Of a DNA stretch of 64,000 nt, positions 8,021-42,400 are shown piece after piece; position 1 is the stretch's first letter; each line of letters begins with the position of its first letter. Source of the stretch: Thalia democratica (taxonomy: Eukaryota); NCBI GenBank assembly GCA_965202585.1, contig OZ241834.1, positions 17,112,001-17,176,000 of the forward strand. Direction: 5' to 3'. The notes beneath the pieces were generated by a model. That model was not told the DNA's origin, did no database searches, and saw only the letters and a program-made list of their open reading frames with translations. A program made the position numbers and the translations under genes.

Positions 8021-8052
8021 GAGGATCAGATGGCGGGATTAAAAGTCCTCTT
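7990..8052 (+). promoter_or_regulatory. -1 programmed ribosomal frameshift signal: A_AAA_AAC slippery heptamer plus predicted H-type pseudoknot
   Basis: Heptamer 7990-7996 is phased X_XXY_YYZ in the gag frame, pol is in the -1 frame, and that frame is open from 7990. Stem 1: 8001-8007 tcccgtc / 8032-8038 ggcggga. Stem 2: 8019-8026 gagaggat / 8045-8052 gtcctctt. Confidence 0.75.
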
Positions 8053-12281: not shown

Positions 12282-12311
12282 AAAAAAAAAAAAAAAAAAA
12301 GAGAGGAAAGG
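12282..12311 (+). promoter_or_regulatory. Polypurine tract
   Basis: A19 followed by gagaggaaagg, ending 3 nt before the 3' LTR. Confidence 0.8.
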
Positions 12312-12314
12312 TAA

Positions 12315-13054
12315 TGTAACGATACGTTATTTAATTCCAATTTTCTATTTTTTACTTGGAAACACTTTGTTGTTGGGAAAGCTAAAAACAACAACAAATG
12401 AGATGTTGACAAGTGATAGTATAAGAAATTTGGAATTGTTGCTATAGCAATAGTCTTTAGTCAAGGAAAGGATTATTGTAAGCTGGGGCATTCTTAGAGA
12501 GAGTAGTCTGAGTTCTGAGGAAAGAATTGGAGTGAAGTTTATTGTCTTCCAGTAGAATCACCTTTTCCTGTATGCTAGTGACTAATTTTATTGACTTTTT
12601 TTATAAGCAAGATACTTAAATTGTTTTTAGACAAATTTAAGTATTTTCTTGAATTTTGTTAACATTGTATAAAATTTTATAACAGTTTATAAAATTTTAT
12701 TGATTTTTTCATACCTGAGTTTTTTATTGTAATTTTTGCCTAATTTTAACTACTTTATTCATTTTAAGTTTTTTATATTTTGTTACAAATTGGTTTACTA
12801 TTAAGTTTTTAGTATATAAATTTATCTCAACTGCTTTGTATTTTATATTATTAAATAATTTTTATAAAAGTAAATTTAAACTATGTCACGGGTCAGTCCA
12901 AATCCAGAGTGTCTTCCAGACACTAGGATTCAAACTCGGGCTAAGAGTGCTCGCATTCAAAGCCAAAGATCTCTTAGCCATGAGTCAACCATTGACCCTC
13001 CTACCCTCCTAAACAAACCCTTGGAAGTTGGCATGCCAACCTCCTCTGGTTTCA
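12315..13054 (+). repeat. 3' LTR (740 bp), carrying a second copy of the first 57 gag codons
   Basis: Same sequence as 5482-6221. ORF 12883-13110 repeats the Gag N-terminus and then reads into the satellite. Confidence 0.93.
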
Positions 13055-16000
13055 TAATGTTTGTTTGTAGTGGCAAAAAACAGTTAAGTTCTTTAAAAAG
13101 AATTTTTTAGTGCAAAGTCCCGCTGTTTTTCTCCAGAATTGTATTGGATATTTAGAAAAACAGCCACCTTTAATCACACGAATTTTTGAAGAAGTTCTGA
13201 GCTCTGTTTGGTGGTAATGTAAGGTCGTTGTAGGAAAGAGCTCTTACGTTGTTTGAAGTAAGTTTTTTGTGAAAAGTTCCGCTGTTATTCTCCAGAATTG
13301 TGTTGATTTTATTTAAATAAACAGCTACCTTTAATCACTCGACTTTTTAAAAAAGATTTGAGCTCTGTTTGGTGGTAATGTTAGGTTGTAGTGGCAAAGA
13401 ACAGTTATTTTCCTTAAAAAGAAGTTTTTTTGTGAAAAGTCCCGCTGTTTTTCTCCAGAATTTTGTTGATTTTATTTAGAAATACAGCTACCTTTAAACA
13501 CTCGACTTTTTAAAGAAGTTTTGAGCTCTGCTTGATGGTAATGTTTCGTTGTAGTAGCATAAAACCGTTTTGTTCTTAAAAAAGAAGTTTAAAAGTCCCG
13601 CTGTTTTTTTCCAGAATTGTGTTGATTTTATTTAGATAAACAGCTACCTTTAATCACTCAACTTTTTAAAAAAGATTTGAGCTCTGCTTGATGGTAATGT
13701 TAGGTTATAGTGTCAAAGAACAATTATGTTCTTAAAAAAGATTTTTTTTGTAACAAGTCCCGCCGTTTTTCTCCAGAATTGTGCTGATTTTATTTAGAAA
13801 AACAGCTGACTTTAAACACTCGACTTTTTAAAGAAGTTCTAAGCTCTGCTTTATTGTAAAACTAGGTTGTATTGGGAAAGAGCTCTTATGTTCTTAAAAC
13901 GGAGTTTTTTGTGGCAAGTCCCGCTTTTTTTTGTTCAGAATTAATTAGGTTTTATCTAAAAAAACAGCTACTTTTAATCACTCGACTTTTTAAAGAAGAA
14001 TTGAGCTCTGTTTGACGGTAATGTTTGGTTGTAGTAGGAAAGAGCTCTTACGTTGATTAAAGTAAGTTTTTTGTGAAAAGTTCCGCTGTTATTCTCCAGA
14101 ATTGTGTTGATTTTATTTAAATAAACAGCTACCTTTAATCACTCGACTTTTTAAAGAAGGTTTGAGCTCTGCTTGACGGTACTGTTAGGTTATAGTGTCA
14201 AAGCACCGTTAAGTTCTTTAAAAAGAAGTTTTTTGTGAAAAGTCCCGCTGTTTTTCTCCAGAATTTTGCTGATTTTATTTAGAAAAACAGCTACCTTTAA
14301 TCACTCAAATTTTTAAAGAGGATTTGAGCTCTGCTTGATGGTAATGTTAGGTTGTAGTGGTAAAGCACCGTTATGTTCTTAAAAAACAAGTTTTTTGTGA
14401 TAAGTCCCGCCGTTTTTATCCAGAATTGTGCTAATTTTATTGAGAAAAACAGCTCACTTTAAACACTCGACTTTTTAAAGAAGATTTGAGCTCTGTTTGA
14501 CGGTACTGTTAGGTTATAGTGTCAAAGCACCGTTATGTTCTTTAAAAAGAAGTTTTTTGTGAAAAGTCCCGCTGTTTTTATCGGGAATTGTGTTGATTTT
14601 ATTTAGAAAAAGAGCTACCTTTAATCACTCGACTTTTTAAAAAAGATTTGAGCTCTGTTTGATGGTAATGTTAGGTTGTAGTGGCAAAGAACAGTTATGT
14701 TCTTAAAAAAGATTTTTTTTGTGAAAAGTTCCGCCGTTTTTTTCCAGAATTGTGCTGATTTTATTTAGAAAAACAGCTGACTTTAATCACTCGACTTTTT
14801 AAAGAAGTTCTAAGCTCTGCTTTATTGTAAAACTAGGTTGTATTGGGAAAGAGCTCTTATGTTCTTAAAACGGAGTTCTTTGTCGCAAGTCCCGCTTTTT
14901 TTGTTTAGAATTAATTAGGTTTTATCTAAAAAACAGCTACCTTTACTCACTCGACTTTTTTAAGAAGAATTGAGCTCTGTTTGGTGGTAATGTTTGGTTG
15001 TAGTAGGAAAGAGCTCCTACGTCGTTTTAGGTAAGTTTTTTGTGAAAAGTTCCGCTGTTATTCTCCAGAATTGTGTTGATTTTATTTAAATAAACAGCTA
15101 CCTTTAATCACTCGACTTTTTAAAGAAGGTTTGAGCTCTGCTTGACGGTACTGTTAGGTTATAGTGTCAAAGCACCGTTAAGTTCTTTAAAAAGAAGTTT
15201 TTTGTGAAAAGTCCCGCTGTTTTTCTCCAGAATTTTGTTGATTTTATTTAGAAAAACAGCTACCTTTAATCACTCAAATTTTTAAAGAGGATTTGAGCTC
15301 TCCTTGATGGTAATGTTAGGTTGTAGTGGTAAAGCACCGTTATGTTCTTAAAAAAGAAGTTTTTTGTGACAAGTCCCGCCGTTTTTCTCCAGAATTTTGT
15401 TGATTTTATTGAAAAAAAAGCTGACTTTAAACACTCGACTTTTTAAAGAAGATTTGAGCTCTGTTTGACGGTACTGTTAGGTTATAGTGTCAAACCACCG
15501 TTATGTTCTTTAAAAAGAAGTTTTTTTTGAAAAATCACGCTGTTTTTATCGGGAATTGTGTTGATTTTATTAAGAAAAAGAGCTACCTTTAATCACTCGA
15601 CTTTTTTAAGAAGATTTGAGCTCTGTTTGATGGTAATGTTAAGTTGTAGTGGCAAAGAACAGTTATGTTCTTAAAAAAGATTTTTTTTGTAACAAGTCCC
15701 GCCGTTTTTCTCCAGAATTGTGCTGATTTTATTTATAAAAACAGCTGACTTTAAACACTCGACTTTTTAAAGAAGTTCTAAGCTCTGATTTATTGTAAAA
15801 CTAGGTTATATTGGGAAAGAGCTCTTATGTTCTTAAAACGGACTTTATTGTCGCATAACCCGCTGTTTTCTCCAGAATTGTATTAAATTTCTTTATAAAA
15901 ACAGCTACCTTTAATCACTCGACTTTTTAAAGAAGATTTGAGCTCTGTTTGACGGTAATGTTAGGTTGTAGTGGCAAAGAACAGTTATGTTCCCTAAAAA

Positions 16001-17780
16001 GAAGTTTTTTACGTTAAGTCCCGCTGTTTTTTCTCCAGAATTGTATTGGATATTTAAAAAAAAAGCTACCTTTAATCACACGACTTTTTAAAGAAGTTCT
16101 GAGCTCTGTTTGGTGGTAATGTTTGGTTGTAGTAGGAAAGAGCTCTTACGTTGATTAAAGTAAGTTTTTTGTGAAAAGTTCCGCTGTTATTCTCCGGATT
16201 GTGTTGATTTTATTTAAATAAACAGCTACCTTTAATCACTCGACTTTTTAAAGAAGATTTGAGCTCTGTTTGACGGTAATGTTAAGTTGTAGTGGCAAAG
16301 CACCGTTATATTCTTTAAAAAGAAGTTTTTTGTGAAAAGTCCTGCTGTTTTTTTCCAGAATTGTGTTTAATTTATTTATAAAAAACAGCTACCTTTTAAC
16401 ACTCGACTTTTTAAAGAAGTTCTAAACTCTGCTTTATTGTAAAACTAGGTTGTATTGGGAAAGAGCTCTTATGTTCTTAAAACGGAGGTTTTTGTCTCAA
16501 TTGCCGCTTATTTTGTTCAGAATTAGTTAGGTTTTATCTAAAAAAGCAGCTACCTTTAATCACTCAACTTTTTAAAGAAGATTTGAGCTCTGTTTGACGG
16601 TAATGTTAGGTTGTAATGGGAAATAACAGTTATGTTCCCTAAAAAGAATTTTTTTGTGACAAGTCCCGCTGTTTTTCTCCAGAATTCTATGGGATATTTA
16701 GAAAAACAGCTACCTTTAATCACATGAATTTTTAAAGAAATTCAGAGCTCTGTTTGATGGTAATGTTAGGTTGTAGTGGCAAAGAACAGTTATGTTCCCT
16801 AAAAAGAGTTTTTTGTGACAAGTCCCGCTGTTTTACTCCAGAATTGTATGGGATATTTAGAAAAACAGCTACCTTTAATCACACGACTTTTTAAAGAAGA
16901 TTTAAGCTCTGTTTGGTTGTAATGTTAGGTTGTAGTGGCAAAGCACCGTTATGTTCTTTAAAAAAAAGTTTTTTGTGAAAAGTCCCGCTGTTTTTCTCCA
17001 GATTTGTGTTGATTTTATTTAGAAAAACAGCCTCCTTTAATCATTCGACTTTTTAAAGAAGTTTTGAGCTCTGCTTGATAGTAATGTTTGGTTATAGTGA
17101 CAAAGTACCGTTATATTCTTTAAAAAGAAGTTTTTTGTGCAAAGTCCCGCTTTTTTTCTCCAGAATTGTGTTAGATATTCAGAAAAACAGCTACCTTTAA
17201 TCACACGATTTTTTAAAGAAGTTCTGAGCTCTGTTTAGTGGTAATGTTAGGATGTAGTGGTAAAGCACAGTTATGTTTTTTGAAAAGAAGTTTTATGTGA
17301 CAAGTTCCGCCGTTTTTCGCTCCAAAATTGTATAGGTTATATTCAGATAAAGAGCTACTATTAATCGAACGATTTTTTAAAGAACTTTTGGGCATTGATT
17401 GATAGTTATTTTAGGTTGCAATAATAAAAAATTCCTTCAGAATAAAGTTTTGTGACATGTTCCGATGTCTTTTTTTTCAGAATCATATAAGTTATAGTTG
17501 TATAAACAGCTACCTTTAATCTAAAGACTTCTCAAAGAAGCTTTCAGCTCTGCTTTATGTTCAACTAAGGTTGGAGTTGGCAAGAGCCCAAATGTTCCTT
17601 AAAAAAAAGTTTTATTGTAACAAGTTTCGCTTTTTTTCTCCAAAATTAAACAAGATTACTTAGAAAAACAGCTGACTTTAATCACAAGACTTTATAAAGA
17701 AGTAGTGTTTACTGTTTGATGGTAATCTTAAGTTTTAATGGGAAAGAACATTTATCCTTCATAAGAAGTTTTTTTTCACA
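13055..17780. repeat. ~161-bp tandem satellite, right arm (about 29 monomers) with ~969-bp six-monomer higher-order repeat
   Basis: The same monomer resumes in register after the TSD. Variant markers recur at ~969-bp spacing between ~13850 and ~15800, and the array decays after ~17300. Confidence 0.95.
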
Positions 17781-20053: not shown

Positions 20054-20346
20054 CTCAAGTTAATACATAGTTTGATCATACCAATTCGATCATCAGACTA
20101 AAAGCCTTCGGTAGACTGAGACCCCTTTTTCGTTCTTAGTGAAACTCGTCAGTTAGCCGCAACCGAAAAACTTGCAGTCGTTAATCTACAAACGGCTTAT
20201 CATGTTCGTTTGTAGATTGACGACTTCAAGTTTTTAGTTCCGGCTGACTGACGAGTTTCACTGAGAACGAAACAGAGGTCTCAGTCTAGCGAAGGCTTGT
20301 TGTCTGATGATCGAATTGGTATGATCAAACTTTGTGTCAACTTGAG
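20054..20346. repeat. Fold-back (palindromic) element, ~140-bp imperfect arms, 12-nt loop
   Basis: ctcaagtt...gtttgatcataccaattcgatcatcagac...aatctacaaacg / loop gcttatcatgtt (20195-20206) / reverse-complement arm ending aacttgag. No clear TSD. Confidence 0.85.
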
Positions 20347-21511: not shown

Positions 21512-22531
21512 TTAAAAAAAGCGTCCCAGCACCACCGCAACAGCAAACGTCAAGGCTCCGGCAACGACTGCAAGTTTGTTCTCTCCAAAAATTCCTTCGC
21601 TAGTTTCCCGGTCGATCCACTGTTTTATTTCGCGGACGTCGATACCAACGCTGGGTCCGTTCGAACTGCACTTGTACCTGGCGTTAGTGCAGCCGTAGCT
21701 GTGCACCGCGAACACCACCCCATCCCTCAAAGGGCTTTCTCCTTTTGCCAGAGCGCATACGAGCGCGGTGCCGGAGTCTCCGGGGGCCGTCTGTTCGCAC
21801 GTTCCTTCGTCGCAGCCGTAGCAGAACTGATTTTTTCCGTCAAAATACGGCCGCTGGCGTCCGTCGACGTACTGCTTGCATCTCCCGCCGTCCAAAAGGT
21901 GGACGGTACCCTGCATCGCCTCGCCCTCGAAGCTCCACGTGTACGTGACGTTGCCGTCGATCGAAGTCGTCCTGGTGTCGAACCCCCACCCTTGCACGAC
22001 GCATTTCGCGCTCGGATCGAACTTCACGTCTTTTTCCAGCAACTTTGCGGGTCGAACGGTGTCTGTTGCGTGAAACTTCTCTTTTGTGTAAATGAGAGCC
22101 ACGTCGTATAAGCTACTTTCAGGATCGTACTGCTTGTGTATGACGATTGATTTTCCGTCGTCACCATACATCTTTTTAAATGTTCGTCGTTGAGCTCTCG
22201 CACTCTCGTCGTTGACGGCCTTCGTGCCGGCTAAAATTTTCACGGCGTGAAAACGATGCAGCGTCGTGGTCCCGTCGACCGTTTTGTTCACGTCCGCCAC
22301 GTTGTGCGCGGCAGTCAAAACCCAGTTCAACTTCACGATGGTGCCTGCGCCTTCCGACCTGCGCATTCCGGCGCCGCTCTCGCTGAAGTAAGTGTGGTAC
22401 AGGCTCAAGTGCACCAAGTGGTTCAGCGTTCCGTGCTCAGCTTTTGACTTGCTGATCACCTGTGATTTCGCTCGCAAAAAGAGCAAACCGATTGCCAAGA
22501 AGCAAAGTATCTTTGGTGCGCTCGAGGACAT
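21512..22531 (-). CDS. Intronless S1A (chymotrypsin-fold) serine protease, 339 aa, with signal peptide and C-terminal hydrophobic anchor (copy A, full length)
   Basis: ATG at 22531 (the ORF track's start at 22546 is TTG). Signal MSSSAPKILCFLAIGLLFLRAKS; triad TAAHNV / YDVALI / GDSGTAL; tail LAVVAGALTFAVAVVLGRFF*. Confidence 0.88.
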   Translation of the reverse strand: MSSSAPKILCFLAIGLLFLRAKSQVISKSKAEHGTLNHLVHLSLYHTYFSESGAGMRRSEGAGTIVKLNWVLTAAHNVADVNKTVDGTTTLHRFHAVKILAGTKAVNDESARAQRRTFKKMYGDDGKSIVIHKQYDPESSLYDVALIYTKEKFHATDTVRPAKLLEKDVKFDPSAKCVVQGWGFDTRTTSIDGNVTYTWSFEGEAMQGTVHLLDGGRCKQYVDGRQRPYFDGKNQFCYGCDEGTCEQTAPGDSGTALVCALAKGESPLRDGVVFAVHSYGCTNARYKCSSNGPSVGIDVREIKQWIDRETSEGIFGENKLAVVAGALTFAVAVVLGRFF

Positions 22532-23245
22532 TTGACTACCCAACAAAGTATTAACGAAATTGTTATAAAAATTTAAGCTTATTTTAGAACTTCACCGTTT
22601 CATGACGTAGTTTTATCAAAAATAGTAACCAAAAACTTATTATTTGAAAACCTAAAAACATAGGAAATTACAAAGTAGCTGTTTTACTGTTACTGTAAGT
22701 GTCAATGTTTGATAATGATTATGAAATGAGCACAGTTTCCTAAAACAAACTTAAGTTTTTGTCTTAGAAAATGGAAAATTAAGGATTTTAATAACTTTCG
22801 TGCAAAACAATAGCAAACAGTAGTTTATTTGTCGTTTGGTAGAGTCCTATTGAAATTCTAGGTGTTTCCCCAGTATTTGCTGAGTCAGCATAAAAGATTT
22901 ATTAAAATTTTGTTTTTTAAATAGTTTATTATATGTTTGGGTAAGGTGGGTTAGAGTTAAGGGTATAAATAAAAAAAAAATAAATAATTTGGGTATAAAT
23001 TAAAAAAAATGATATAAAAAATTCCAACTCTGCAAATATTAGGGGAATACGTTTCACTTAAAATCGGACCCATCAGGCAGGCATAGTCGCGAGAAACCGT
23101 TGTTGTTATCTTACCAAGCGGTCTTAAGTAAAAAGTACTTAGTCTCAACTTTGTTGATGATGGCCGAAATAGATATTGGTTAAAACTAAGAATTAAAGAA
23201 AGTTAAAACTATAAAATTTTCACACCAATGCAGAACAATGTATTA

Positions 23246-24062
23246 CAGTGCTTAACCACTTATCCGGAAAAGTTAGGCAACATGTCCGGATCGGCAAGAT
23301 ATTATTCAAAAAAAAATCAAAAAATAATATAACTGCTGTATATTGTGCAAAGCATAATAAATGATAAAAGCTCAGCTTCTCTTTTTCTGCTTTAAACTTT
23401 TTTAATTTTTTTTGGTTTTCAAAAAGTCGTAAAAAGTTGACCTGCCTATGCTAAACTGCTACATTATAAATAACTTTAACGTTTTACAAAACCATTTTAC
23501 AAACTTCTACATTATTTTAAATGGTTAGTGCAAAACTTTTCCTTTTTTTATTTCTTATTAATTTATAATACCTGGTATGTTGATCGGCCTAATTTATATA
23601 ACTTATAAATAACAACTGAAAATAATTGTCATGCATCTAATCTTAAAAAAAGTTTATGAATTAACAATTTTTATAGTATAGTTTTGAATTAAAACTCAAA
23701 CATAAAAGAACTGTTATAAATTCTTTTTCTAAAACTATCAAAAAAAACTTTAAAAGATTAAATAAAAAACTATATTTTAAACAATATTGTTTGAAAAAAA
23801 ATTAAAAACTGACTTTCTTTCTTTACATACAAGATTTTTAATAACTAAACTAGTTTTGAACAAGGTTTAAATGTAAGCTTTAGTAGTTTTATAACGTCAT
23901 CATAGTGGACTTAATTGCATAATTTATAACACACTTAATTTTTTTACAGCATGAAAGTCAAAATACTTGTATCACACAAAAACTTTAGTGTTTAATATTG
24001 AAATTTTTTCTCGAACGAAACAGTCCGGATAAGTGAGCGTCCGGATAAGTGAACAAGCACTG
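23246..24062. mobile_element. Non-autonomous Tc1/mariner/pogo-type MITE (817 bp) upstream of protease copy A
   Basis: TA on both flanks. TIRs cagtgcttaaccacttatccgga / revcomp cagtgcttgttcacttatccgga (20/23 match). No ORF. Confidence 0.75.
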
Positions 24063-24322
24063 TAGTTGTGAGTTACCGTTCGAAAACAAAAAAAAATCCA
24101 GTATAAAATTCTTTTGAGTTTATAGTGATAATTTTTATTCCAAAAACTGTAAAACACTTTACAAGAACTTGTTCTATCACTTCCAATCAGTAAAGTTTCT
24201 TTTTCACCGGAAATAATCTATGGTGTATATATTTTTAATAACTATATAGCAAAAATATCTCAATAAGTTACATAATCAAATTTTCAGGTATTTACTCTCT
24301 TCTAATGTAATTCTTTTTACTT

Positions 24323-24452
24323 CGAGCCTGTCCTGGACAAGACGTTAAAAGGTATCCAACTAGCTGTACGACTCGATAATAGAAAGGTTTTTTCGTGCAC
24401 TAGGTCCTAAGACCAAATATTTTGAGCGCTCTTTTTTTGTCGTTCAATAAAC
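24323..24452. repeat. ~130-bp dispersed repeat (also at ~30717-30846 through the duplication, and diverged at 62421-62544)
   Basis: Shared blocks gtacgactcgata..aaa.gtttttt, tttgagc.ct.tttttt..cgttcaataaac, and upstream aga(c/t)gttaaa..gtatc. Confidence 0.6.
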
Positions 24453-27076
24453 AATTTTAAGCAAAAAACATAGTTGATACCGCTTAAATAAAAGCTAATC
24501 AACCAAGTTGCTTAGACTCTACAAAATTCAGGAAAATTTTTATCAGAAGCAATAAGTAAAAAATAGCTTTTAAGATGAGCTTTTAGAACTAAAACAAGGA
24601 GCTAAAAGCACAAAAAAACTTTAATTTTCAAATAGACAGTCAAGAAAGGAAAACTTCTTTCAACAACAGCAATTTCTATGTGAGGTTTTTCCAGATTATT
24701 TAAAAAAAATCAGACTGAATCTAGCTTGTTTTAAATATAGTTTTTTGTTAAGTTCAGGCTAAATTTGATTTTTCTATCAATTTCAGGCTAGCTATTAAAA
24801 CATTTTCTGTTTGGACTTAGGGTATTTTCTACTAGATGTTAATCACTTCTACTACTATTATATAGTTTTTGATATTCGAGTTTGACTAACAGTAACTTTT
24901 AAAGTTATAATTTTTCTTTACGTGCCTTAGTTTACTGAAAAGTTTATTAAAGTTTTTTTATTTGATAAGCAAAATAAGTTAAAAATAGATACACTTAAAA
25001 CTTATAAGAACTTGTACAATACATGTATACATACTTTTAATTAGCTAATTTTTGTTAAAGTACGTTCTAGTCTTGAAAGAATCCGTAGAGCTGTATATAT
25101 TTTAAAGGCATCGTCGTTAGTGGGTTAAATAATTTTGTACAAAAGCAGTTGTTGTTTTGGTTTTTCGACATACTTCACTTCTATGGATCTTTAGATTTAA
25201 CACCTTATTATATTATCTTTAATATAACTTTCTACCAAGCCTGTATAAAATAACTTTTTTTTTTCTTGTCAATTTTACCATGTTGTATTTAGGAATCGAA
25301 ACCTGAGCCACTTAAACAGGACACACAAAAGAACATAAGAAAGTAAAAAAAAACACATTCTAATCAACTATTAGGGAGATGTTGTGCTAAGTTATATTAA
25401 TATTATAGTATACTGTAATATTGGTTGGTTTTTGATGTATCTTGTTCTTCTTAATTTTTTGAATATTTTTTTTGAATAATTATTTAGCAGTTTAAAAGCA
25501 ATTTGTTTACATTGAAGTTGAATGTTTTAGTTTTATACTTAAACTATACTTGTCTAAAACTTTAGATAATAATTTTTGTTAAGTTTCTTTTATATACAAA
25601 CTACTTAAAGAAATTAGAGGTAGATTTACTAAGACAAAATTCCTTAAGCTATACTGTTAAAAAGATGGTGCAAATCTAACTAAAAGTGTTGATTATAAAT
25701 GATAGATAAAAAAATTCATTTAACTAAAAATACATTTTTTAATCTTAAAGTTTTAGTACTTTAAAAAAATTAAACAACTGTTGCGGTTTCTATAACATGC
25801 GTACTTAAAAATAGGTAAAGAGTATATTAAATAATTTTATCATCTTCAGCAAAAAATTTAAGACTGAAAATTAAGTTTTACATTTACAGTTACTGATTGA
25901 ATTTTTTTTCAGTTATGTACAAAACTGTTTTTACGAAAAAAAAAACAATTTTTACATAATGTTTTACTTATATCCCATAACAAATTTTAGAACTTATCTA
26001 AACTACTGTAAACACTTTAAAATTTTTTAAAGTATTAGATCTAATAAAACACTATTTTTTAACGATAAAAAAACTCTCCATCTTAATCGAAAATAAAAAT
26101 TTAAACTAAGATTAGTTTAAAAATAGATACATTGTTTAAAAAAAGTTATAAAAAAAGTTAACTTTATGAGTATAGATTTTAATAGTTTTTAAAGCAAACA
26201 AAGAAATTTGAAGGGAAAGGGGATACAAAACTATACAATAGTTTGAAAAAAGAAAACTCAAACACTAAAATAGAAAGAAAATTTTATTATTAAATTTAAT
26301 AGTTTTGCCTACGAAAATTTTTAGTTGTAAATTTTTAAAAGGTTTAAAACAGTTGGTGCTTTTTCTTAATAAATCGAAAATATAATAATGAGCACCATTT
26401 TATAGAACTAATGAAAACGTTAGCTTTTTTCACAAACTTCTTTAAAATTATTAAGAAAAAAACGAATTGCAAACAATTATTGCGTTTAAAAAAAAATCAT
26501 ATTTAAGTATCTTTTTTATTCAGCTTGAATATTTTTGTATGAAAAAAATTATTTATTTGTTTCTAATTAATTACATTAAAGACAGAACACAATATCAAAG
26601 TTTCCAGAGTGTTATAAAATAAAATCGAACAATTTCAAAATTTATATAAAAAAGCTAAGAAAGTATTAGGACGGTTGTTTGTCAAACTCATACTTTAATT
26701 TCTTCACTAAAATTTATTATACTGCTTTTAACTACAAGTATTAAGAAGTAATTTATAGTTTATCAAAATATTTTACTAATAGAAAAGCACAAAGTATAAA
26801 AGTGAAGCAGTCAATACATAAACAACAGCATTAAGCTTACAACTAGATCTATATACAAACGCTATGTTAAAAATATCAAATATTTTGTACAAAAGTTAAC
26901 TTATAACTCTTTTATAAGTTGTTAGTAAAACTTAGTCCTATAAAATTCAAGTTTAATGTATTACACTCAAAGTACTCATGTTTCACACCAAAGGCTGTCT
27001 GTACAAAAAAAAAAGTTATTCAAAAAACTTGGAGTGATGTTCAAATGCCCTTTTTTAAAAAGAGAGTGGCACGAAC

Positions 27077-27316
27077 TTAGTTGTTGTTTGCCGACGACCC
27101 TTGCGGGGTCCCTTCCCTCGACATCTGCTTGCCCTGCTTCCCCAGTGTCGGAGCCTTGCCCTGGACGGCCGCCTGAGCCACCGACGAGAAGAGCGCGTGG
27201 GCGTGCTGCACCGACTGCGGGTACACGTCAGCCGCCTGCATGTTGTACAGCATCGCGGCCGGGTTCAGTCCCGCGAAAGTGGCCGGATCAGACAAGTTCA
27301 TTCGATTCATTTGTTG
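27077..27316 (-). pseudogene. Orphan duplicate of the GMEB-like terminal exon
   Basis: Copy of 33471-33710 with its cag acceptor intact and one Q->K change (27139). It now lies downstream of protease copy B. Confidence 0.75.
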
Positions 27317-27956
27317 CTGCAATTTGATTGTAATGAAATTGTGTTGAAGCGTCAAAGTTAGAAAAAAAGTTGCTAAAATCAGCGTTCTTGTATTGTGTAT
27401 TTACGATTAAAAGTAGTTAAAGATGTGAAGACAGTTTAAATAAAGCTTATAAAAAGTCAATAAAGTTTTGAAGCACTAATATAAAAAAATACAAAAAAAA
27501 TATAACGTTTGGCTTATCACAACTAAGTATTAAATATAGAATAATAACACAGATTTATTTAATGAATGTTTAGAAACTAAGCTTTGTGAAATTATCTTTG
27601 AAGTAAATTTAATTACTTTATAAGTATACTTTACTAACAATATTAAATTTTATAGCACTTATTAGATTATGACAAAATATTGATTTAAAGTTTCACTTTG
27701 TATTTGAAAAAAATGTTTTGGAATTAACTTAGTATAATTTTAAAATGTTAAAATTTTGCATTCTAACTAATAAAATAGTTTAAGTTATTTTAAAGGCATT
27801 GAAAAACCCAGTAAAAGTAATCAGATTTTTTTAGATTTTGAAATAAAATTTTTTTTAAAGAAAACTCAAAACTTTTATAAATAAGAATGAGTGTTACTAA
27901 ACAAGTAAGGTTAACTTTTGCAATCAATTTAACAATTTATAATGCTTTAAGAAAAA

Positions 27957-28925
27957 TTAAGTCTTCAAAAAGTTCTCTCCAAAAATTCCTTCGCTAGTTT
28001 CCCGGTCGATCCACTGTTTTATTTCGCGGACGTCGATACCAACGCTGGGTCCGTTCGAACTGCACTTGTACCTGGCGTTAGTGCAGCCGTAGCTGTGCAC
28101 CGCGAACACCACCCCATCCCTCAAAGGGCTTTCTCCTTTTGCCAGAGCGCATACGAGCGCGGTGCCGGAGTCTCCGGGGGCCGTCTGTTCGCACGTTCCT
28201 TCGTCGCAGCCGTAGCAGAACTGATTTTTTCCGTCAAAATACGGCCGCTGGCGTCCGTCGACGTACTGCTTGCATCTCCCGCCGTCCAAAAGGTGGACGG
28301 TACCCTGCATCGCCTCGCCCTCGAAGCTCCACGTGTACGTGACGTTGCCGTCGATCGAAGTCGTCCTGGTGTCGAACCCCCACCCTTGCACGACGCATTT
28401 CGCGCTCGGATCGAACTTCACGTCTTTTTCCAGCAACTTTGCGGGTCGAACGGTGTCTGTTGCGTGAAACTTCTCTTTTGTGTAAATGAGAGCCACGTCG
28501 TATAAGCTACTTTCAGGATCGTACTGCTTGTGTATGACGATTGATTTTCCGTCGTCACCATACATCTTTTTAAATGTTCGTCGTTGAGCTCTCGCACTCT
28601 CGTCGTTGACGGCCTTCGTGCCGGCTAAAATTTTCACGGCGTGAAAACGATGCAGCGTCGTGGTCCCGTCGACCGTTTTGTTCACGTCCGCCACGTTGTG
28701 CGCGGCAGTCAAAACCCAGTTCAACTTCACGATGGTGCCTGCGCCTTCCGACCTGCGCATTCCGGCGCCGCTCTCGCTGAAGTAAGTGTGGTACAGGCTC
28801 AAGTGCACCAAGTGGTTCAGCGTTCCGTGCTCAGCTTTTGACTTGCTGATCACCTGTGATTTCGCTCGCAAAAAGAGCAAACCGATTGCCAAGAAGCAAA
28901 GTATCTTTGGTGCGCTCGAGGACAT
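27957..28925 (-). CDS. S1A serine protease copy B, 322 aa: identical catalytic domain, C-terminal anchor replaced by FLKT*
   Basis: The translation is identical to copy A up to GIFGEN, then crosses the duplication junction into intron-derived sequence (TTT TTG AAG ACT TAA). Confidence 0.8.
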   Translation of the reverse strand: MSSSAPKILCFLAIGLLFLRAKSQVISKSKAEHGTLNHLVHLSLYHTYFSESGAGMRRSEGAGTIVKLNWVLTAAHNVADVNKTVDGTTTLHRFHAVKILAGTKAVNDESARAQRRTFKKMYGDDGKSIVIHKQYDPESSLYDVALIYTKEKFHATDTVRPAKLLEKDVKFDPSAKCVVQGWGFDTRTTSIDGNVTYTWSFEGEAMQGTVHLLDGGRCKQYVDGRQRPYFDGKNQFCYGCDEGTCEQTAPGDSGTALVCALAKGESPLRDGVVFAVHSYGCTNARYKCSSNGPSVGIDVREIKQWIDRETSEGIFGENFLKT

Positions 28926-29639
28926 TTGACTACCCAACAAAGTATTAACGAAATTGTTATAAAAATTTAAGCTTATTTTAGAACTTCACCGTTTCATGAC
29001 GTAGTTTTATCAAAAATAGTAACCAAAAACTTATTATTTGAAAACCTAAAAACATAGGAAATTACAAAGTAGCTGTTTTACTGTTACTGTAAGTGTCAAT
29101 GTTCGATAATGATTATGAAATGAGCACAGTTTCCTAAAACAAACTTAAGTTTTTGTCTTAGAAAATGGAAAATTAAGGATTTTAATAACTTTCGTGCAAA
29201 ACAATAGCAAACAGTAGTTTATTTGTCGTTTGGTAGAGTCCTATTGAAATTCTAGGTGTTTCCCCAGTATTTGCTGAGTCAGCATAAAAGATTTATTAAA
29301 ATTTTGTTTTTTAAATAGTTTATTATATGTTTGGGTAAGGTGGGTTAGAGTTAAGGGTATAAATAAAAAAAAAATAAATAATTTGGGTATAAATTAAAAA
29401 AAATGATATAAAAAATTCCAACTCTGCAAATATTAGGGGAATACGTTTCACTTAAAATCGGACCCATCAGGCAGGCATAGTCGCGAGAAACCGTTGTTGT
29501 TATCTTACCAAGCGGTCTTAAGTAAAAAGTACTTAGTCTCAACTTTGTTGATGATGGCCGAAATAGATATTGGTTAAAACTAAGAATTAAAGAAAGTTAA
29601 AACTATAAAATTTTCACACCAATGCAGAACAATGTATTA

Positions 29640-30456
29640 CAGTGCTTAACCACTTATCCGGAAAAGTTAGGCAACATGTCCGGATCGGCAAGATATTATT
29701 CAAAAAAAAATCAAAAAATAATATAACTGCTGTATATTGTGCAAAGCATAATAAATGATAAAAGCTCAGCTTCTCTTTTTCTGCTTTAAACTTTTTTAAT
29801 TTTTTTTGGTTTTCAAAAAGTCGTAAAAAGTTGACCTGCCTATGCTAAACTGCTACATTATAAATAACTTTAACGTTTTACAAAACCATTTTACAAACTT
29901 CTACATTATTTTAAATGGTTAGTGCAAAACTTTTCCTTTTTTTATTTCTTATTAGTTTATAATACCTGGTATGTTGATCGGCCTAATTTATATAACTTAT
30001 AAATAACAACTGAAAATAATTGTCATGCATCTAATCTTAAAAAAAGTTTATGAATTAACAATTTTTATAGTATAGTTTTGAATTAAAACTCAAACATAAA
30101 AGAACTGTTATAAATTCTTTTTCTAAAACTATCAAAAAAAACTTTAAAAGATTAAATAAAAAACTATATTTTAAACAATATTGTTTGAAAAAAAATTAAA
30201 AACTGACTTTCTTTCTTTACATACAAGATTTTTAATAACTAAACTAGTTTTGAACAAGGTTTAAATGTAAGCTTTAGTAGTTTTATAACGTCATCATAGT
30301 GGACTTAATTGCATAATTTATAACACACTTAATTTTTTTACAGCATGAAAGTCAAAATACTTGTATCACACAAAAACTTTAGTGTTTAATATTGAAATTT
30401 TTTCTCGAACGAAACAGTCCGGATAAGTGAGCGTCCGGATAAGTGAACAAGCACTG
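29640..30456. mobile_element. Duplicate of the Tc1/mariner-type MITE upstream of protease copy B
   Basis: Same TIRs and TA flanks as 23246-24062, shifted by +6394. Confidence 0.75.
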
Positions 30457-33400
30457 TAGTTGTGAGTTACCGTTCGAAAACAAAAAAAAATCCAGTATAA
30501 AATTCTTTTGAGTTTATAGTGATAATTTTTATTCCAAAAACTGTAAAACACTTTACAAGAACTTGTTCTATCACTTCCAATCAGTAAAGTTTCTTTTTCA
30601 CCGGAAATAATCTATGGTGTATATGTTTTTAATAACTATATAGCAAAAATATCTCAATAAGTTACATAATCAAATTTTCAGGTATTTACTCTCTTCTAAT
30701 GTAATTCTTTTTACTTCGAGCCTGTCCTGGACAAGACGTTAAAAGGTATCCAACTAGCTGTACGACTCGATAATAGAAAGGTTTTTTCGTGCACTAGGTC
30801 CTAAGACCAAATATTTTGAGCGCTCTTTTTTTGTCGTTCAATAAACAATTTTAAGCAAAAAACATAGTTGATACCGCTTAAATAAAAGCTAATCAACCAA
30901 GTTGCTTAGACTCTACAAAATTCAGGAAAATTTTTATCAGAAGCAATAAGTAAAAAATAGCTTTTAAGATGAGCTTTTAGAACTAAAACAAGGAGCTAAA
31001 AGCACAAAAAAACTTTAATTTTCAAATAGACAGTCAAGAAAGGAAAACTTCTTTCAACAACAGCAATTTCTATGTGAGGTTTTTCCAGATTATTTAAAAA
31101 AAATCAGACTGAATCTAGCTTGTTTTAAATATAGTTTTTTGTTAAGTTCAGGCTAAATTTGATTTTTCTATCAATTTCAGGCTAGCTATTAAAACATTTT
31201 CTGTTTGGACTTAGGGTATTTTCTACTAGATGTTAATCACTTCTACTACTATTATATAGTTTTTGATATTCGAGTTTGACTAACAGTAACTTTTAAAGTT
31301 ATAATTTTTCTTTACGTGCCTTAGTTTACTGAAAAGTTTATTAAAGTTTTTTTATTTGATAAGCAAAATAAGTTAAAAATAGATACACTTAAAACTTATA
31401 AGAACTTGTACAATACATGTATACATACTTTTAATTAGCTAATTTTTGTTAAAGTACGTTCTAGTCTTGAAAGAATCCGTAGAGCTGTATATATTTTAAA
31501 GGCATCGTCGTTAGTGGGTTAAATAATTTTGTACAAAAGCAGTTGTTGTTTTGGTTTTTCGACATACTTCACTTCTATGGATCTTTAGATTTAACACCTT
31601 ATTATATTATCTTTAATATAACTTTCTACCAAGCCTGTATAAAATAACTTTTTTTTTTCTTGTCAATTTTACCATGTTGTATTTAGGAATCGAAACCTGA
31701 GCCACTTAAACAGGACACACAAAAGAACATAAGAAAGTAAAAAAAAACACATTCTAATCAACTATTAGGGAGATGTTGTGCTAAGTTATATTAATATTAT
31801 AGTATACTGTAATATTGGTTGGTTTTTGATGTATCTTGTTCTTCTTAATTTTTTGAATATTTTTTTTGAATAATTATTTAGCAGTTTAAAAGCAATTTGT
31901 TTACATTGAAGTTGAATGTTTTAGTTTTATACTTAAACTATACTTGTCTAAAACTTTAGATAATAATTTTTGTTAAGTTTCTTTTATATACAAACTACTT
32001 AAAGAAATTAGAGGTAGATTTACTAAGACAAAATTCCTTAAGCTATACTGTTAAAAAGATGGTGCAAATCTAACTAAAAGTGTTGATTATAAATGATAGA
32101 TAAAAAAATTCATTTAACTAAAAATACATTTTTTAATCTTAAAGTTTTAGTACTTTAAAAAAATTAAACAACTGTTGCGGTTTCTATAACATGCGTACTT
32201 AAAAATAGGTAAAGAGTATATTAAATAATTTTATCATCTTCAGCAAAAAATTTAAGACTGAAAATTAAGTTTTACATTTACAGTTACTGATTGAATTTTT
32301 TTTCAGTTATGTACAAAACTGTTTTTACGAAAAAAAAAACAATTTTTACATAATGTTTTACTTATATCCCATAACAAATTTTAGAACTTATCTAAACTAC
32401 TGTAAACACTTTAAAATTTTTTAAAGTATTAGATCTAATAAAACACTATTTTTTAACGATAAAAAAACTCTCCATCTTAATCGAAAATAAAAATTTAAAC
32501 TAAGATTAGTTTAAAAATAGATACATTGTTTAAAAAAAGTTATAAAAAAAGTTAACTTTATGAGTATAGATTTTAATAGTTTTTAAAGCAAACAAAGAAA
32601 TTTGAAGGGAAAGGGGATACAAAACTATACAATAGTTTGAAAAAAGAAAACTCAAACACTAAAATAGAAAGAAAATTTTATTATTAAATTTAATAGTTTT
32701 GCCTACGAAAATTTTTAGTTGTAAATTTTTAAAAGGTTTAAAACAGTTGGTGCTTTTTCTTAATAAATCGAAAATATAATAATGAGCACCATTTTATAGA
32801 ACTAATGAAAACGTTAGCTTTTTTCACAAACTTCTTTAAAATTATTAAGAAAAAAACGAATTGCAAACAATTATTGCGTTTAAAAAAAAATCATATTTAA
32901 GTATCTTTTTTATTCAGCTTGAATATTTTTGTATGAAAAAAATTATTTATTTGTTTCTAATTAATTACATTAAAGACAGAACACAATATCAAAGTTTCCA
33001 GAGTGTTATAAAATAAAATCGAACAATTTCAAAATTTATATAAAAAAGCTAAGAAAGTATTAGGACGGTTTTTTGTCAAACTCATACTTTAATTTCTTCA
33101 CAAAAATTTATTATACTGCTTTTAACTACAAGTATTAAGAAGTAATTTATAGTTTATCAAAATATTTTACTAATAGAAAAGCACAAAGTATAAAAGTGAA
33201 GCAGTCAATACATAAACAACAGCATTAAGCTTACAATTAGATCTATATACAAACGCTATGTTAAAAATATCAAATATTTTGTACAAAAGTTAACTTATAA
33301 CTCTTTTATAAGTTGTTAGTAAAACTTAGTCCTATAAAATTCAAGTTTAATGTATTACACTCAAAGTACTCATGTTTCACACCAAAGGCTGTCTGTACAA

Positions 33401-33470
33401 AAAAAAAAGTTATTCAAAAAACTTGGAGTGATGTTCAAATGCCCTTTTTTAAAAAGAGAGTGGCACGAAC

Positions 33471-36400
33471 TTAGTTGTTGTTTGCCGACGACCCTTGCGG
33501 GGTCCCTTCCCTCGACATCTGCTTGCCCTGCTGCCCCAGTGTCGGAGCCTTGCCCTGGACGGCCGCCTGAGCCACCGACGAGAAGAGCGCGTGGGCGTGC
33601 TGCACCGACTGCGGGTACACGTCAGCCGCCTGCATGTTGTACAGCATCGCGGCCGGGTTCAGTCCCGCGAAAGTGGCCGGATCAGACAAGTTCATTCGAT
33701 TCATTTGTTGCTGCAATTTGATTGTAATGAAATTGTGTTGAAGCGTCAAAGTTACGAAAAAAAGTTGCTAAAATCAGCGTTCTTGTATTGTGTATTTACG
33801 ATTAAAAGTAGTTAAAGATGTGAAGACAGTTTAAATAAAGCTTATAAAAAGTCAATAAAGTTTTGAAGCACTAATATAAAAAAATACAAAAAATATATAA
33901 CGTTTGGCTTATCACAACTAAGTATTAAATATAGAATAATAACACAGATTTATTTAATGAATGTTTAGAAACTAAGCTTTGTGAAATTATCTTTGAAGTA
34001 AATTTAATTACTTTATAAGTATACTTTACTAACAATATTAAATTTTATAGCACTTATTAGATTATGACAAAATATTGATTTAAAGTTTCACTTTGTATTT
34101 GAAAAAAATGTTTTGGAATTAACTTAGTATAATTTTAAAATGTTAAAATTTTGCATTCTAACTAATAAAATAGTTTAAGTTATTTTAAAGGCATTGAAAA
34201 ACCCAGTAAAAGTAATCAGATTTTTTTAGATTTTGAAATAAAATTTTTTTTAAAGAAAACTCAAAACTTTTATAAATAAGAATGAGTGTTACTAAACAAG
34301 TAAGGTTAACTTTTGCAATCAATTTAACAATTTATAATGCTTTAAGAAAAATTAAGTCTTCAAAAAGTTAATGATTGAAAATATTTTATATGAAAACTGT
34401 AATAGAAAAGAAAGTACTTGTATGTCGGGCCATCTTTGATGCTGAAGACCTCTAGTTGCTGCTACCAAATTACTTGCAATGGGGGGTGTTGTTGATGACC
34501 CAGTAAAGTCTGACCAAGCTTTACCGACATCTGTTTTAAAACCGAATTGAGTAAATAAATATAAAACTTTTTTTTTAATTGAAAAAATTACCACCAATAG
34601 TTGGATTAGGAAGCCTGTCAATTGCTTTTTGTCTTACGATTTTGTACATTTTTGGTCTTTTTTCAGTTGGTATAAGTTGAGTTGCATCAGTCAATACTCT
34701 CGATTTTCTTTTTAAATCTTGGTCCAATTTTTTTTGTTCTGCTAGACGTTTTTCTAAATCTATAGTTTTTAAAAATTAAATAAACTGTCTTAATTAGATT
34801 TTCCTAAAAATTCAAATTTAATTTTAAACATTTAACCTAAAGTAAAACTATTGTTATTAGTCATAGCAGGACTAATCTACTACCCTAATACTTAATCTGA
34901 TGCTAACTTACATTTTTTTAGAAATGAAGTTTATTGAAGTTTATGTTTACTAGAGCATGGAAATTTTACTTAAACTAAAACTTTAAAATGCAGAAAAAAA
35001 ATTAATTGCAAATTTGCTTTCTTAAGTGAGTTACAAAAACCATACAGTCAAAACATGATTGACTTTATTGTAGTATTAATCTGCATTAATTTCTTTAAAA
35101 GTTTGTTTCTAAAAATAATCTTAAAATATTTATGATTCAAACTAAAATACCTTTGTAGACTCTTATGTTTTTTGTCTACTCAGTTTTGATAAAAATAGGA
35201 TAACAAAAATCGCAAAAAAATATTCTTAGTTACCATGTATTATGTTAGCGTTATCTTCGGATTGTTTGTCAACAGAATGTTTATGAAAATTAAGTCTGTG
35301 CCTTATATTAGGAATGATTTCCAACGCTGCTACTGTGTTTGTCAACGTAACAGCATCTAAAAAAGTAACAGTAATAAATATCTAAATAGTGATTTATATA
35401 AGTTTTAAAGTATAAGAAAAGTTGTTTTAACACACATAAAAAACCAAACAATTAATACGTTTATGAAAATTTTATAAAGTCAAGCCAGAATACTTATTAG
35501 AGGATTTATTATACTGTGGTAGCTGTCAGGACTTTTCAAGTAGTAGTCATTTTTATGGCCCTAAGAAATTATGTTGTAAATGTGCTACGCTTGCAAAAGT
35601 TTTACTAAAGCAATTAAGATCTTTGATATAAAACTCAATAAACTACTCAACTAAGAAAAAGGTCTCTGTTTTTTTTTCTAATATAATTATAAATTTCTAC
35701 TTAATAGAAAATATATTTAAGAAGAAAGTAAACCTTTATGTTTGACAAGTTTTATTAATATAACTTATATTGTGCAAAACTATTAACTTAATTAAATAAT
35801 AAATTTTAAATTTTATTAAACAAAACAACGTTTCACTCGTTTGAAGACGAGATCTTCAGTTGTTTTAAATCTTTTTCAAATAGATTCTATTCTATTTGAA
35901 TAAGATTTTAAACAAATGAAGATCTCGTCTTCAAACGAGTGAAACATTGTTTTGTTTAATAAAATTTAAAATTTATTATTGATCAATCTCCTTTTATTTT
36001 ATTTAAGTTGAGAACTTTAATTGCCACCTTTAAAGTATAAAGTACGCAACTTAATTAAAGGGAATTATTTTTTTGAGCTAAAAAAAGTAAATTAACTACG
36101 TGTTTTAGTTTGAACTAGACTTACTACTAAGTAAAAAAATTAAATAAGTTGCTTGTTTACAGAAGATCCTAGTCTTTAAACAAATTTTTCTAGTTTAGCT
36201 TTAGTACAACTCTTTTTTTTTACTTTGTATTATGTGCTAAAACTTGATACTATATCCTAAATTAGCTTTCTCATCCTGGTAATATTAAATTTTTACATGA
36301 TCTTAGCCAAAAATCCTAAGTTAACAAGAATATAACTTCTATCGATCGGTTATTTGTAAGCATCTAATTATTTTATTGGTCTAAATTTAATAGTTTAAAT

Positions 36401-39400: not shown

Positions 39401-42400
39401 CTTACATTTGAAGCTAATTTTGTGTTAAAACTGTTCATTCTAAAAAGTTTCTTAAATGTTAGTCTAAACATAATACATGCAATACTTATATATTTAAAAC
39501 AATAACTTACTTTTTATTTCTATAGACCATTACTTTTGGTAAAAGAAGAACTTGATAAAAGTTAATACCAAGTTTAAGTTATACTTTTATTTTTCTTATG
39601 TTAGGAAAACTTATAATTTAGTCTACTATTTATTTTAATTAGCTTATGCTATAAATATATTTAAAAAGTTTAAAGTTTATAGCGAAAGAGTTTAAACTGG
39701 CTTGGTTTTATCGTTTCAGGTTTTATAATAATACTTTATTCAATAAACTATATCTAAGTTAGTCAAAGGTGTTTTTATACGTCTAGACTACGTGTTTTGT
39801 ATCAAAATTAATTAGATAGAATAACTGTTTTCGCTATTACGTTTGATTACTCAAAGGTCTAGGTATGTTCACCTTTGAATTAGTCTGTTTTATGAATTTT
39901 TGAATAAAAGTTTCTTCTTGTCAGCAAATTAATTTCTTATACTATGGGTCAAGTACTAAAAATAGTCAAAAGTACAGTGAAAAGTTTCACTTTAAAAGTT
40001 TCAAGATTAAATTAAAAACTCTTACTTATAAAATACTACCATAAATGCTTCAAAAAAGTTATAGGTTAGTAAAACCAAATTTCAAACAGATTAAAGAGCA
40101 ACAGAAAAATTTTAAAACAACTAAAGTTTTGTGAAACTTAAGAAATACTTTAAGGACAGTGAAACTTACCTCTTTTGTTGAGGTGGTGTGGGCCAGTTCT
40201 TCTTGAAGCTATTACACTTGTGTACATGGATCCAGAGTCGTCATGGGTGTGCTGAGTAATGACTGATGTTTCAGTGTGAGGCTTTAATATTAAATTTTCA
40301 TCAGTTCAAATGATTTTTTTAATGCAAAATACTGAGTTAGTTTAAGAATTTATTTAAAAAAAGTATAAGTTTTTGCTTTCGATAAAAATCTTACGTGTAT
40401 CATTAGAAATCTTAAAATGTCATGCCTATTTAAAATAAAAAATTTTAAAGGTATTTTAAGAATTAATACGACAGCACTTTTTTAATCTTTATAAAAATTA
40501 CTAATTAGTTTTTGGTGACATTTAGATAGTTTTCGAAGCAAAGTAAAATTTACTTTAAAAAAACAACATATTTCAAAAACTAAATCAAAATATTTGTTTA
40601 AGTTTTACTTTGAAAAATGTTTGTTCCTTCATTACGAATTTTGTTATAACTTAAACTAAAACATAAGGATAACCAAATTTAGATGTTATTGTTATCCAGA
40701 TAATATTTGTCCAAAAAAATATATTTTTTTTAGTTAAATATGTGTTTGTAGTTTTGTTTCCTTTTGTAGCTAGTAAAATTTTATTTACTTTTCTTTTACC
40801 TAAAAATTTTTTTTTAGAAAAGTAAACTAGTTTATTTTAAGTTGGTAAAATGTTCTCATTAAAATACATAGAATTTGTTAATGAAATTTTTCTTCAAAAT
40901 TTATCACTGTTTATACTGTAGTACGAATAAAATCTTATAATAAAAACTAGTCTTAAAACGGTATTTATTTTTTCTAGATAGTTACTATTTGATTATTCCA
41001 AATAGAATAATAGTTACTCCATAACGTTTCTGTCCACACTAGTGTGCACAAGTGCAATTAAAAAAATCACTGTTTTAACATACAGTCATTTTTTACTATG
41101 CAAATAATTTTCTCCTAACTTTAGAAATAGCACAAACATCACATTTTAAGTAATGAAATAATAAACCTATCCTTTTCTAAACAAAATAAAAATAAACGCT
41201 GATAGTTTTCAAGGTCAAGGTAACACGAAATATTTAAACTTAAAGTATTTAGTTTACATTTTTTAATATGTTATAGAACAAAAAAACTTTTAAATAAGTT
41301 CAAAACACTCTTATACATATGTGCTAGATAGTTATTTTTTAAGTTTTTTTAATAAATAAAATGCTGAGCTAATTAGTACAATTTCAAAAAAAGGTTGTTT
41401 ATGTAACGATCTTACTATAAATCAAAAGTTAAACATTTTAATATTCTTCAGTTTAGCAAAACAAAAGCAATTAGTTAGTATACGAACCTGCACTGCAGGC
41501 TCATCAAAAGATTTGTTTGATCTGCATTGATTTGAACAGTTGTTATCATGATCATAATAGTTCAAATCTCCTTGTTCAATTAGTTTTCTAAATTTATAAA
41601 GGGTGTTACTTTAGAACATTAAAAAGTAAAAAGTATTTTAAGCAAGGAAACTAATTATGTTTAACATAGTTATACCATGTCTACTTTTTGTAGTACTCAT
41701 TTATAATTATGTAATTATATTTTTTTTATTAACAACAAAATTTTATATTGCACTTTGAAATCTAAAAAAAAAAGCTACTTCCTTTAACTTAGTCACTTTG
41801 GTTTTTGTTTAATTTCTAAAAAAGAGTTTAAAAAATTATTAAGAAGTTTATAGTTATGTAAAATATTTCTAGTCTTTTAATCATTACTTTTGGTTGTTTA
41901 GTTAAAAGAAAAGTTGTTCAACAAATTTAGGAAATCTAAAATAAAAGAGTAGGTTAAAAACCTTAGCATTTGGCCTTTTATTCTAATTGCTCGTTTCCAA
42001 TCTTTTAAAGTTGACTTTCCTGCCAAATTTACGAATTCTTTTGGAGTTAACCAAGTGTCTTGCGTCTGAAACAAAGTTTATAGTTATTAAATTTTTAAAT
42101 TTATTCGAAAAATTAATCTAGCAAGCTTACTTTCACACATTTAGCGTTAATTCCTGGACAGACAAATTTCTTCCAAATTAGTTCTCCTTGATTGTTACCG
42201 CAAGTGATTGGATATGTAGTGTCATCATTAGGTCTGTTGAGAAAGTTTAACTTTTTAAAGACAGTATTCACATTTTTTTCTTTTGATGAAACAAAGTTTG
42301 AAACAAAGTTAAGTATGATTTCCATGCTAAATGATTAATGCATATCAACAAAAAAAGACAGTATATTTTAATATAGTTTTATAAGGTATCTATTAAGAAA

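Follow-up and report, generated by a model that had tools for sequence, protein, structure and literature searches.

The question raised by this locus is whether a tandem duplication that breaks inside a protease gene has placed a soluble version of the enzyme beside a membrane-tethered one. The locus lies in a 64-kb window of Thalia democratica DNA (assembly GCA_965202585.1, contig OZ241834.1, positions 17,112,001 to 17,176,000 of the forward strand), and all positions below are counted from the first letter of this window. The window holds two copies, A and B, of a gene for a trypsin-like serine protease of the S1A group, and next to them a gene resembling GMEB. The explanation we favour, at about even strength, is that copy B is a real and very young partial duplicate, most likely encoding a secreted, tail-less version of the anchored protease.

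Self-BLAST of the window aligns 21578-27974 with 27972-34369 as one direct, head-to-tail repeat of 6,398 columns, with 99.86% identity, 8 mismatches and 1 gap. A repeat search places the starts of the two copies 6394 and 6395 positions apart. Unit A (21578-27971, 6,394 bp) contains codons 1-318 of the protease and 3.6 kb of intergenic DNA, and from the GMEB-like gene the terminal exon, its 3' untranslated region (3'UTR) and the 3' portion of the last intron. Unit B (27972-34369) has the same content with 8 substitutions and one single-base indel. In a base-by-base alignment the differences fall at 22710, 23561, 24231, 26677, 26708, 26843, 27139, 27360 (the indel) and 27499, and none of the nine is inside the protease coding part. 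The similarity between the copies breaks off abruptly at 21577/21578 and at 34369/34370. One breakpoint separates protease codons 318 and 319; the other is some 50-100 nt inside the last intron of the GMEB-like gene, the neighbour directly upstream of the protease on the same strand. In minus-strand orientation, GGAGAGAAC leads up to the breakpoint in copy A and AAACTTGCAG follows it, the junction has GGAGAGAAC followed by TTTTTGAAGACTTAA, and the right flank has CATTAAC followed by TTTTTGAAGAC. Comparison of the three sequences therefore gives an overlap of AAC (GTT on the plus strand, 27972-27974), with which unit A ends and unit B begins. An initial annotation of this DNA had proposed a 6.4-kb tandem duplication of about 99.9% identity, broken just after GIFGEN at a 3-bp GTT; the self-BLAST and the sequences on either side of the join bear out both points. 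By our own arithmetic, an overlap of at least 3 bp arises by chance at a blunt join with a probability of about 5%, and the microhomology suggests a mechanism without being proof of it. The window contains no N, the junction included, and a search of the 802-Mb assembly for the junction 20-mer gave a single occurrence.

The two protease genes, both on the minus strand, differ in how they end. Copy A (21512-22531), the ancestral form, is a single exon that encodes 339 residues from the ATG, with a signal peptide, the triad His76, Asp143 and Ser253, and a hydrophobic C-terminal tail at residues 321-337. Its codons 319-339 (KLAVVAGALTFAVAVVLGRFF) and the stop, at 21512-21577, are placed outside the duplication by the base-by-base alignment. 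Copy B (27957-28925), the derived form, encodes 322 residues. Residues 1-318 are those of copy A and are followed by FLKT and a stop taken from intron DNA, so that the protein ends GIFGENFLKT and has no hydrophobic tail. The source of FLKT and the stop is GMEB-like intron sequence that is also present at 34369-34355. The upstream region of copy B is complete (3.6 kb), with only 3 base differences from that of copy A. Translation of the 339-residue reading frame agrees with the earlier description of copy A as ending in 17 hydrophobic residues. The companion description of copy B, as keeping the signal peptide, upstream region and complete catalytic domain and ending in FLKT, also stands, since residues 1-318 are identical and the Pfam match given below is intact. 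In a collection of 15 billion proteins, neither exact protein was found; it holds only a 96% identical tailed form with 4 members.

Regarding the catalytic domain, the Pfam Trypsin profile (PF00089) matches copy A with an E value of 9.5e-23 and copy B with 3.3e-22, at 80-82 bits against a cut-off of 20.6, and the match stops at residue 306, before the 318/319 break. His76 (in TAAH), Asp143 and Ser253 (in GDSG) are invariant across 19 aligned family sequences, and the GDSG of copy A aligns with the active-site motif of enteropeptidase. The matches to solved structures are S1A enzymes, namely the enteropeptidase light chain (E 1e-8), MASPs and prostasin (E 1e-4); alignment to such enzymes gives Gln at chymotrypsin position 189 and Ala at position 191. 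An AlphaFold model built from the alignment of 19 sequences has a predicted template-modelling score (pTM) of 0.77, and its best Foldseek matches are granzyme B, cathepsin G and chymase (E about 1e-17, TM-score at most 0.87 on the target). In this model the last helix of the fold spans residues 303-312, a low-confidence linker at 314-327 contains the 318/319 break, and the tail forms a separate helix. Since the break lies in a disordered linker beyond the last helix of the fold, copy B keeps the whole fold. The enzyme has atypical features, among them these residues at 189 and 191. At the other end of the protein, no IVGG-type N-terminus is present in copy A or in the aligned family, where Gln24 and then VIS or VLS come directly after the signal peptide. 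The Gln that directly follows the predicted cleavage site (AKS/QVIS; window 22460-22465, residues 23-25 of copy A) is invariant in 19 of 19 aligned members. The V-I/L-S stretch in place of IVGG hints at an unusual activation step.

The tail itself has a best 15-residue hydropathy mean of 2.62 in copy A, with its 17-residue hydrophobic run, compared with -0.28 in copy B. A terminal hydrophobic run is found in 16 of 17 foreign homologues (35-96% identity), in all ten of the nearest paralogues of the genome and in about 15 of 20 remoter ones. The sequence of the tail drifts while its hydrophobic character stays, as expected of a physico-chemical targeting signal. Five remoter, intact paralogues (L025, L029, L030, L031 and L036) are naturally tail-less and end shortly after the last helix of the fold; thus, tail-less members can persist in this protease family. 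The tail of copy A is laid out as small residues (S313 and G315), a six-residue spacer, the 17 hydrophobic residues and RFF at the extreme end. Judged from this layout, a glycosylphosphatidylinositol (GPI) attachment signal is more likely than a short transmembrane helix with a three-residue cytoplasmic end, and either would tether the enzyme, whose anchoring is predicted. That GPI or a C-terminal helix can anchor S1A proteases at the membrane is established (PMC10252689).

To examine the junction in raw data, we compared positions 25000-30999 with four sequencing runs, all in the form of Logan contigs. Run X1 comes from organism A and is probably the source sample of the assembly, with a word depth of about 110. 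Contig 4 of X1 (1,106 nt, aligned over its whole length) ends at 27974, and contig 5 (1,293 nt) begins at 27972. In a de Bruijn assembly, a contig stops at a branch in the graph. Because the X1 contigs end exactly at both sides of the 3-bp overlap, the raw data have two continuations at both breakpoints; this is what a tandem junction predicts, and it supports the duplication over an assembly error. At 26843 the copy A letter in X1 has a depth of about 34 out of 133, roughly 25%, and another private variant, at 25221, makes up about 26%, the latter being weaker as it lies near a contig end. Fractions of this size fit three to four copies per diploid genome and not a heterozygous single-copy site. 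We hold with high confidence that the duplication is real in the source individual. A search for a second haplotig of the locus gave none; only two matches above 55% identity occur in the assembly, and both are in this window. As a separate feature of the compared stretch, the protease upstream region at 29200-29600 and 30400-30999 (22806-23206 and 24006-24605 in copy A) contains very high-copy repeats, with a word depth of up to about 2e5 compared with about 110 for unique DNA in X1 and X3, and many contig joints and loose ends fall within these repeats.

Relatives of the source individual show the state without the duplication. In run X3 (organism B, about 98.8% identical), a 2,512-nt contig runs past 27972 into sequence foreign to the compared stretch. 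In X4, a Tara Oceans metagenome, a 2,122-nt contig also runs past 27972 and encodes the protein P0001. The metatranscriptome X5 has a 1,052-nt RNA contig at 27972-28745 that extends 278 nt beyond 27972, and the 30-nt loose end shown is the copy A tail; the ancestral tailed form is transcribed. Four metagenome loci (L013-L016, that is, the X4 contig and three more, from three metagenome assemblies) run collinear with copy A across the breakpoint (95-96% identity), and L014 continues 3.9 kb beyond it. All four encode the tailed form, ending KLAVVAGALTFAAAVVLGRFL. Since X3, X4, X5 and L013-L016 run into the ancestral tail, the duplication is young and specific to a lineage or an individual, and X1 is the one sample among all of these in which it is seen. 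As judged by the same outgroups, the tailed long form is ancestral. Copies A and B differ by 0.13%, against 1.2% for organism B and 4-5% for the metagenome lineage; a value so much lower places the duplication after those splits. Relative to the outgroups, the letters at 22710, 26843 and 27139 and the deletion at 27360 are derived in copy A, and the letter at 29955 is derived in copy B. The differences between the copies may have arisen as new mutations; if the two units derive from different homologues, they may instead be old polymorphism. A search of JGI metagenomes with the junction 24-mer gave no match and is uninformative, as the wild relatives found are 1-5% diverged.

Copy B has lost the natural 3' end of the gene, and the DNA downstream of it comes from the GMEB-like neighbour. 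That gene lies on the minus strand, and its SAND-domain exons at 41898-42325 (42325-42113 and 42074-41898) match PF01342 with E values of 1e-13 and 4e-9, the best solved match being 1OQJ (GMEB-1, E about 1e-11); the GMEB label given earlier to the source of the recruited intron is thus upheld. The segment at 34370-34550, just outside the duplication, holds the penultimate exon together with the initial 48 nt (or 96 nt) of the last intron, with exon borders predicted from the letters. The likely donor of this intron is CAA/GT at 34418/34417, with an alternative TTG/GT at 34466/34465, and both are in phase 0. The right breakpoint (34370-34418) is only about 50 nt from this exon-intron border. 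The reading frame at 27355-27077 on the minus strand is preceded by an acceptor, ttgcag/CAACAA, with the exon start at 27316 and the stop at 27077, and X5 contigs span 26168-27035 with a depth that climbs towards 26200-26400, as in a 3'UTR. From the acceptor, the compatible donors and this depth profile, 27316-26168 is therefore read as a terminal exon with its 3'UTR. In unit A it is an orphan (26168-27316, minus strand, coding part 27316-27077), 0.64-1.8 kb downstream of the copy B stop. In unit B the coding part of the same exon lies at 33471-33710 (minus strand, coordinates from the copy offset, acceptor ttgcag/CAACAA, phase 0), and the intact GMEB-like gene is expected to use this exon at 33710, across an intron of about 700 nt. 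Because the gene can splice to the copy B terminal exon, it is left intact by the duplication. The ancestral order on the minus strand was the GMEB-like gene, 3.6 kb of intergenic DNA and the protease.

A transcript of copy B would run from its stop through about 650 nt of intron remnant into the orphan terminal exon, which has a poly(A) region. This orphan exon and 3'UTR could serve as the poly(A) source for copy B and is a better candidate than the AATAAA that the initial annotation had named as available. The hexamer is indeed present at 27554-27559 on the minus strand. It carries no weight as evidence for a 3' end and was rejected as such, since AATAAA is abundant in this AT-rich window (402 occurrences in 64 kb compared with 309 expected).

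In the explanation we favour, the event was a non-homologous join at the 3 bp of microhomology, by template switching during replication or by end joining. The join placed protease codons 1-318 before four intron-recruited codons (FLKT) and a stop, without the tail. Both parent genes, the GMEB-like gene and protease A, stay intact, and the added piece is a partial protease gene with its full upstream region. If transcribed like its parent, copy B would enter the secretory pathway and be released rather than held at the membrane; removal of GPI-type C-terminal signals is known to yield a secreted protein from work on GPI signals and on prostasin. Expression, secretion and activity of copy B are predictions.

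Several points weigh against this explanation. The only RNA contig compared, in X5, has the ancestral tail, and the population sampled there lacks the duplication. The copies have no coding differences and hence carry no signal of selection. Among the X1 contigs listed, which are the longest pieces, none bridges the junction by at least 31 nt, so the junction in X1 is deduced from contig ends, and X1, as the probable source data, does not count as an independent individual. The compared stretch includes no single-copy flank, and the copy number depends on one allele fraction of about 25% and the weaker one at 25221. Finally, the conserved basic-aromatic end of the tail (RFF, KYFY) does not decide between a GPI signal and a transmembrane helix. 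One alternative is that the duplication is real but the tail serves as a C-terminal propeptide that is cut off, or as a sorting signal; loss of the tail would then not make a tethered enzyme soluble. The hydrophobic run is indeed short (13-17 residues) and ends in the conserved basic-aromatic motif, which fits a classic GPI signal or a full-length transmembrane helix imperfectly. However, small residues (S, G, N), a short polar spacer and a terminal hydrophobic stretch after a secreted domain are the standard layout of a GPI signal, as in prostasin and testisin (PMC10252689), and the family has kept the tail despite sequence drift, as a physico-chemical signal would be. We consider a non-anchoring tail improbable. 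An assembly artefact is about equally improbable. Here two haplotypes of a single-copy region would have been strung in tandem, or a chimeric read threaded into the contig; the 0.13% divergence is within the allelic range, haplotigs left uncollapsed occur at other loci of the assembly (C315 duplicates a C6 locus, and C513 one on C5, each with identical scores), and X1 shares its probable origin with the assembly. Nevertheless, the junction has neither gap nor N and its 3-bp overlap cannot come from read overlap, the X1 contig ends at exactly 27974 and 27972 mean that the junction words recur in raw data, and a minor allele of about 25% at 26843 misfits two haplotypes of a single-copy locus.

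The more serious competitor, which we think unlikely but give clearly more credence than the two above, accepts the duplication and takes copy B as a neutral or slightly harmful copy-number variant that is silent, poorly terminated or unstable in its product and will be lost. Most partial duplicates are lost. The duplication is seen in S1 (X1) only and not in X3, X4, X5 or L013-L016, the RNA compared shows the ancestral form only, and the 3' end of copy B is improvised. Partial duplicates are also the majority of new duplications in worms and flies, making up 63% of spontaneous duplications in mutation-accumulation lines of Caenorhabditis elegans and 76% of duplication variants in natural lines of Drosophila melanogaster (PMC3449122). 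On the other hand, the upstream region of copy B is complete over 3.6 kb with its 3 base differences, its reading frame is intact with the stop in its only exon, so that splice-dependent decay is not expected, a genuine poly(A) region lies downstream, and tail-less paralogues persist as intact reading frames. A stronger version of the favoured explanation, in which copy B is a nascent gene driven by the duplicated promoter, polyadenylated in the orphan GMEB-like 3'UTR, active as a soluble secreted enzyme and rising in organism A, has only a small probability in our judgement. Taken as a whole, the interpretation in the initial annotation is partly supported. Its phrase 'new gene caught at birth' describes a possible outcome but is overstated, as no class is commoner among young duplications than partial duplicates.

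In the classification of Katju and Lynch (reviewed in PMC3449122), the arrangement is a 'partial duplicate with recruitment'. As in that class, a tandem, DNA-mediated duplication breaks inside a reading frame, keeps the promoter and 5' part and takes new terminal codons from non-coding flank, and the ancestral state is set by outgroup sequences. In contrast to typical members, the piece lost here is exactly a putative C-terminal targeting signal, which predicts a change of location and not a catalytic loss; copy B is also so recent that no coding difference has arisen, and a single sample is known to carry it. Compared with the GPI-anchored S1A enzymes prostasin (PRSS8) and testisin (PRSS21), the Thalia protease is built in the same order: signal peptide, a single chymotrypsin-fold domain, hydrophobic C-terminal signal. 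However, the identity is only about 20-25%, and the Thalia protease has no pro-peptide or IVGG site (Q-VIS follows the signal peptide), carries Ala at the Cys191 position and Gln at 189, and is a single-exon member of a lineage-private family; its GPI attachment is predicted from the layout. Gamma-tryptase (TPSG1/PRSS31) is an S1A protease with a C-terminal transmembrane helix. It shares with the Thalia protease a protease domain followed by a C-terminal hydrophobic, anchor-like run and almost no cytoplasmic tail, although there is no close sequence relationship and a typical plasma-membrane helix is longer than the Thalia run.

Should copy B prove to be expressed, the locus would be a cleanly polarised case in which one structural mutation shifts an enzyme from the cell surface to the medium while its catalytic part and promoter are untouched. 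Neither parent gene is lost, and wild relatives document the ancestral state. The duplication itself brings a ready-made 3' end in the form of the neighbour's terminal exon. Events of this kind are common and amply described; the value of the locus is that of a tidy, testable case and not of a new principle. It also marks the ongoing turnover of a much-expanded protease family. Should copy B be a nascent gene, it would show how tail-less members of the family arise, by breakpoints in the linker between fold and tail.

The family is single-exon and lineage-private, with at least 97 matches in the genome, and the nearest paralogue is only 54% identical. A horizontal or retrogene origin of this GC-rich, intronless protease was set aside, since the matches lie on many chromosomes and the exons of the spliced neighbour are GC-rich as well, which makes this the normal coding composition. 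Paralogues also occur as identical-scoring tandem copies, three of them 8,563 bp apart on C2 (G000:C2:50956532-50974557) and two 16.5 kb apart on C1 (G000:C1:73956325-73973783). The tandem gene on C2 is L031, one of the naturally tail-less paralogues. Recent tandem amplification thus seems common in this family. One paralogue, L020 (G000:C5:35190794-35192434, with a copy on C513), has a 600-residue reading frame with two trypsin-like domains in tandem and a terminal hydrophobic tail. Small contigs such as C513, C315 and C382 score identically to the chromosome loci that they repeat, and are probably haplotigs left uncollapsed.

Outside the duplication, two palindromes lie 1.2-1.5 kb from its ends, at 20054-20346 (87% complementarity) and 35795-35980 (93.5%). 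They could be foldback or MITE-like elements; a part for them in fork stalling or template switching is speculation. Nearer the start of the window, a long terminal repeat (LTR) retrotransposon with 747-bp LTRs at 5476-6222 and 12310-13055 sits within a satellite array (period about 160 bp) that continues to either side of the element (3615-5481 and 13055-17780; whole region 3615-17780). Its LTRs are 99.87% identical, with one indel, and by this measure the element is as young as the duplication.

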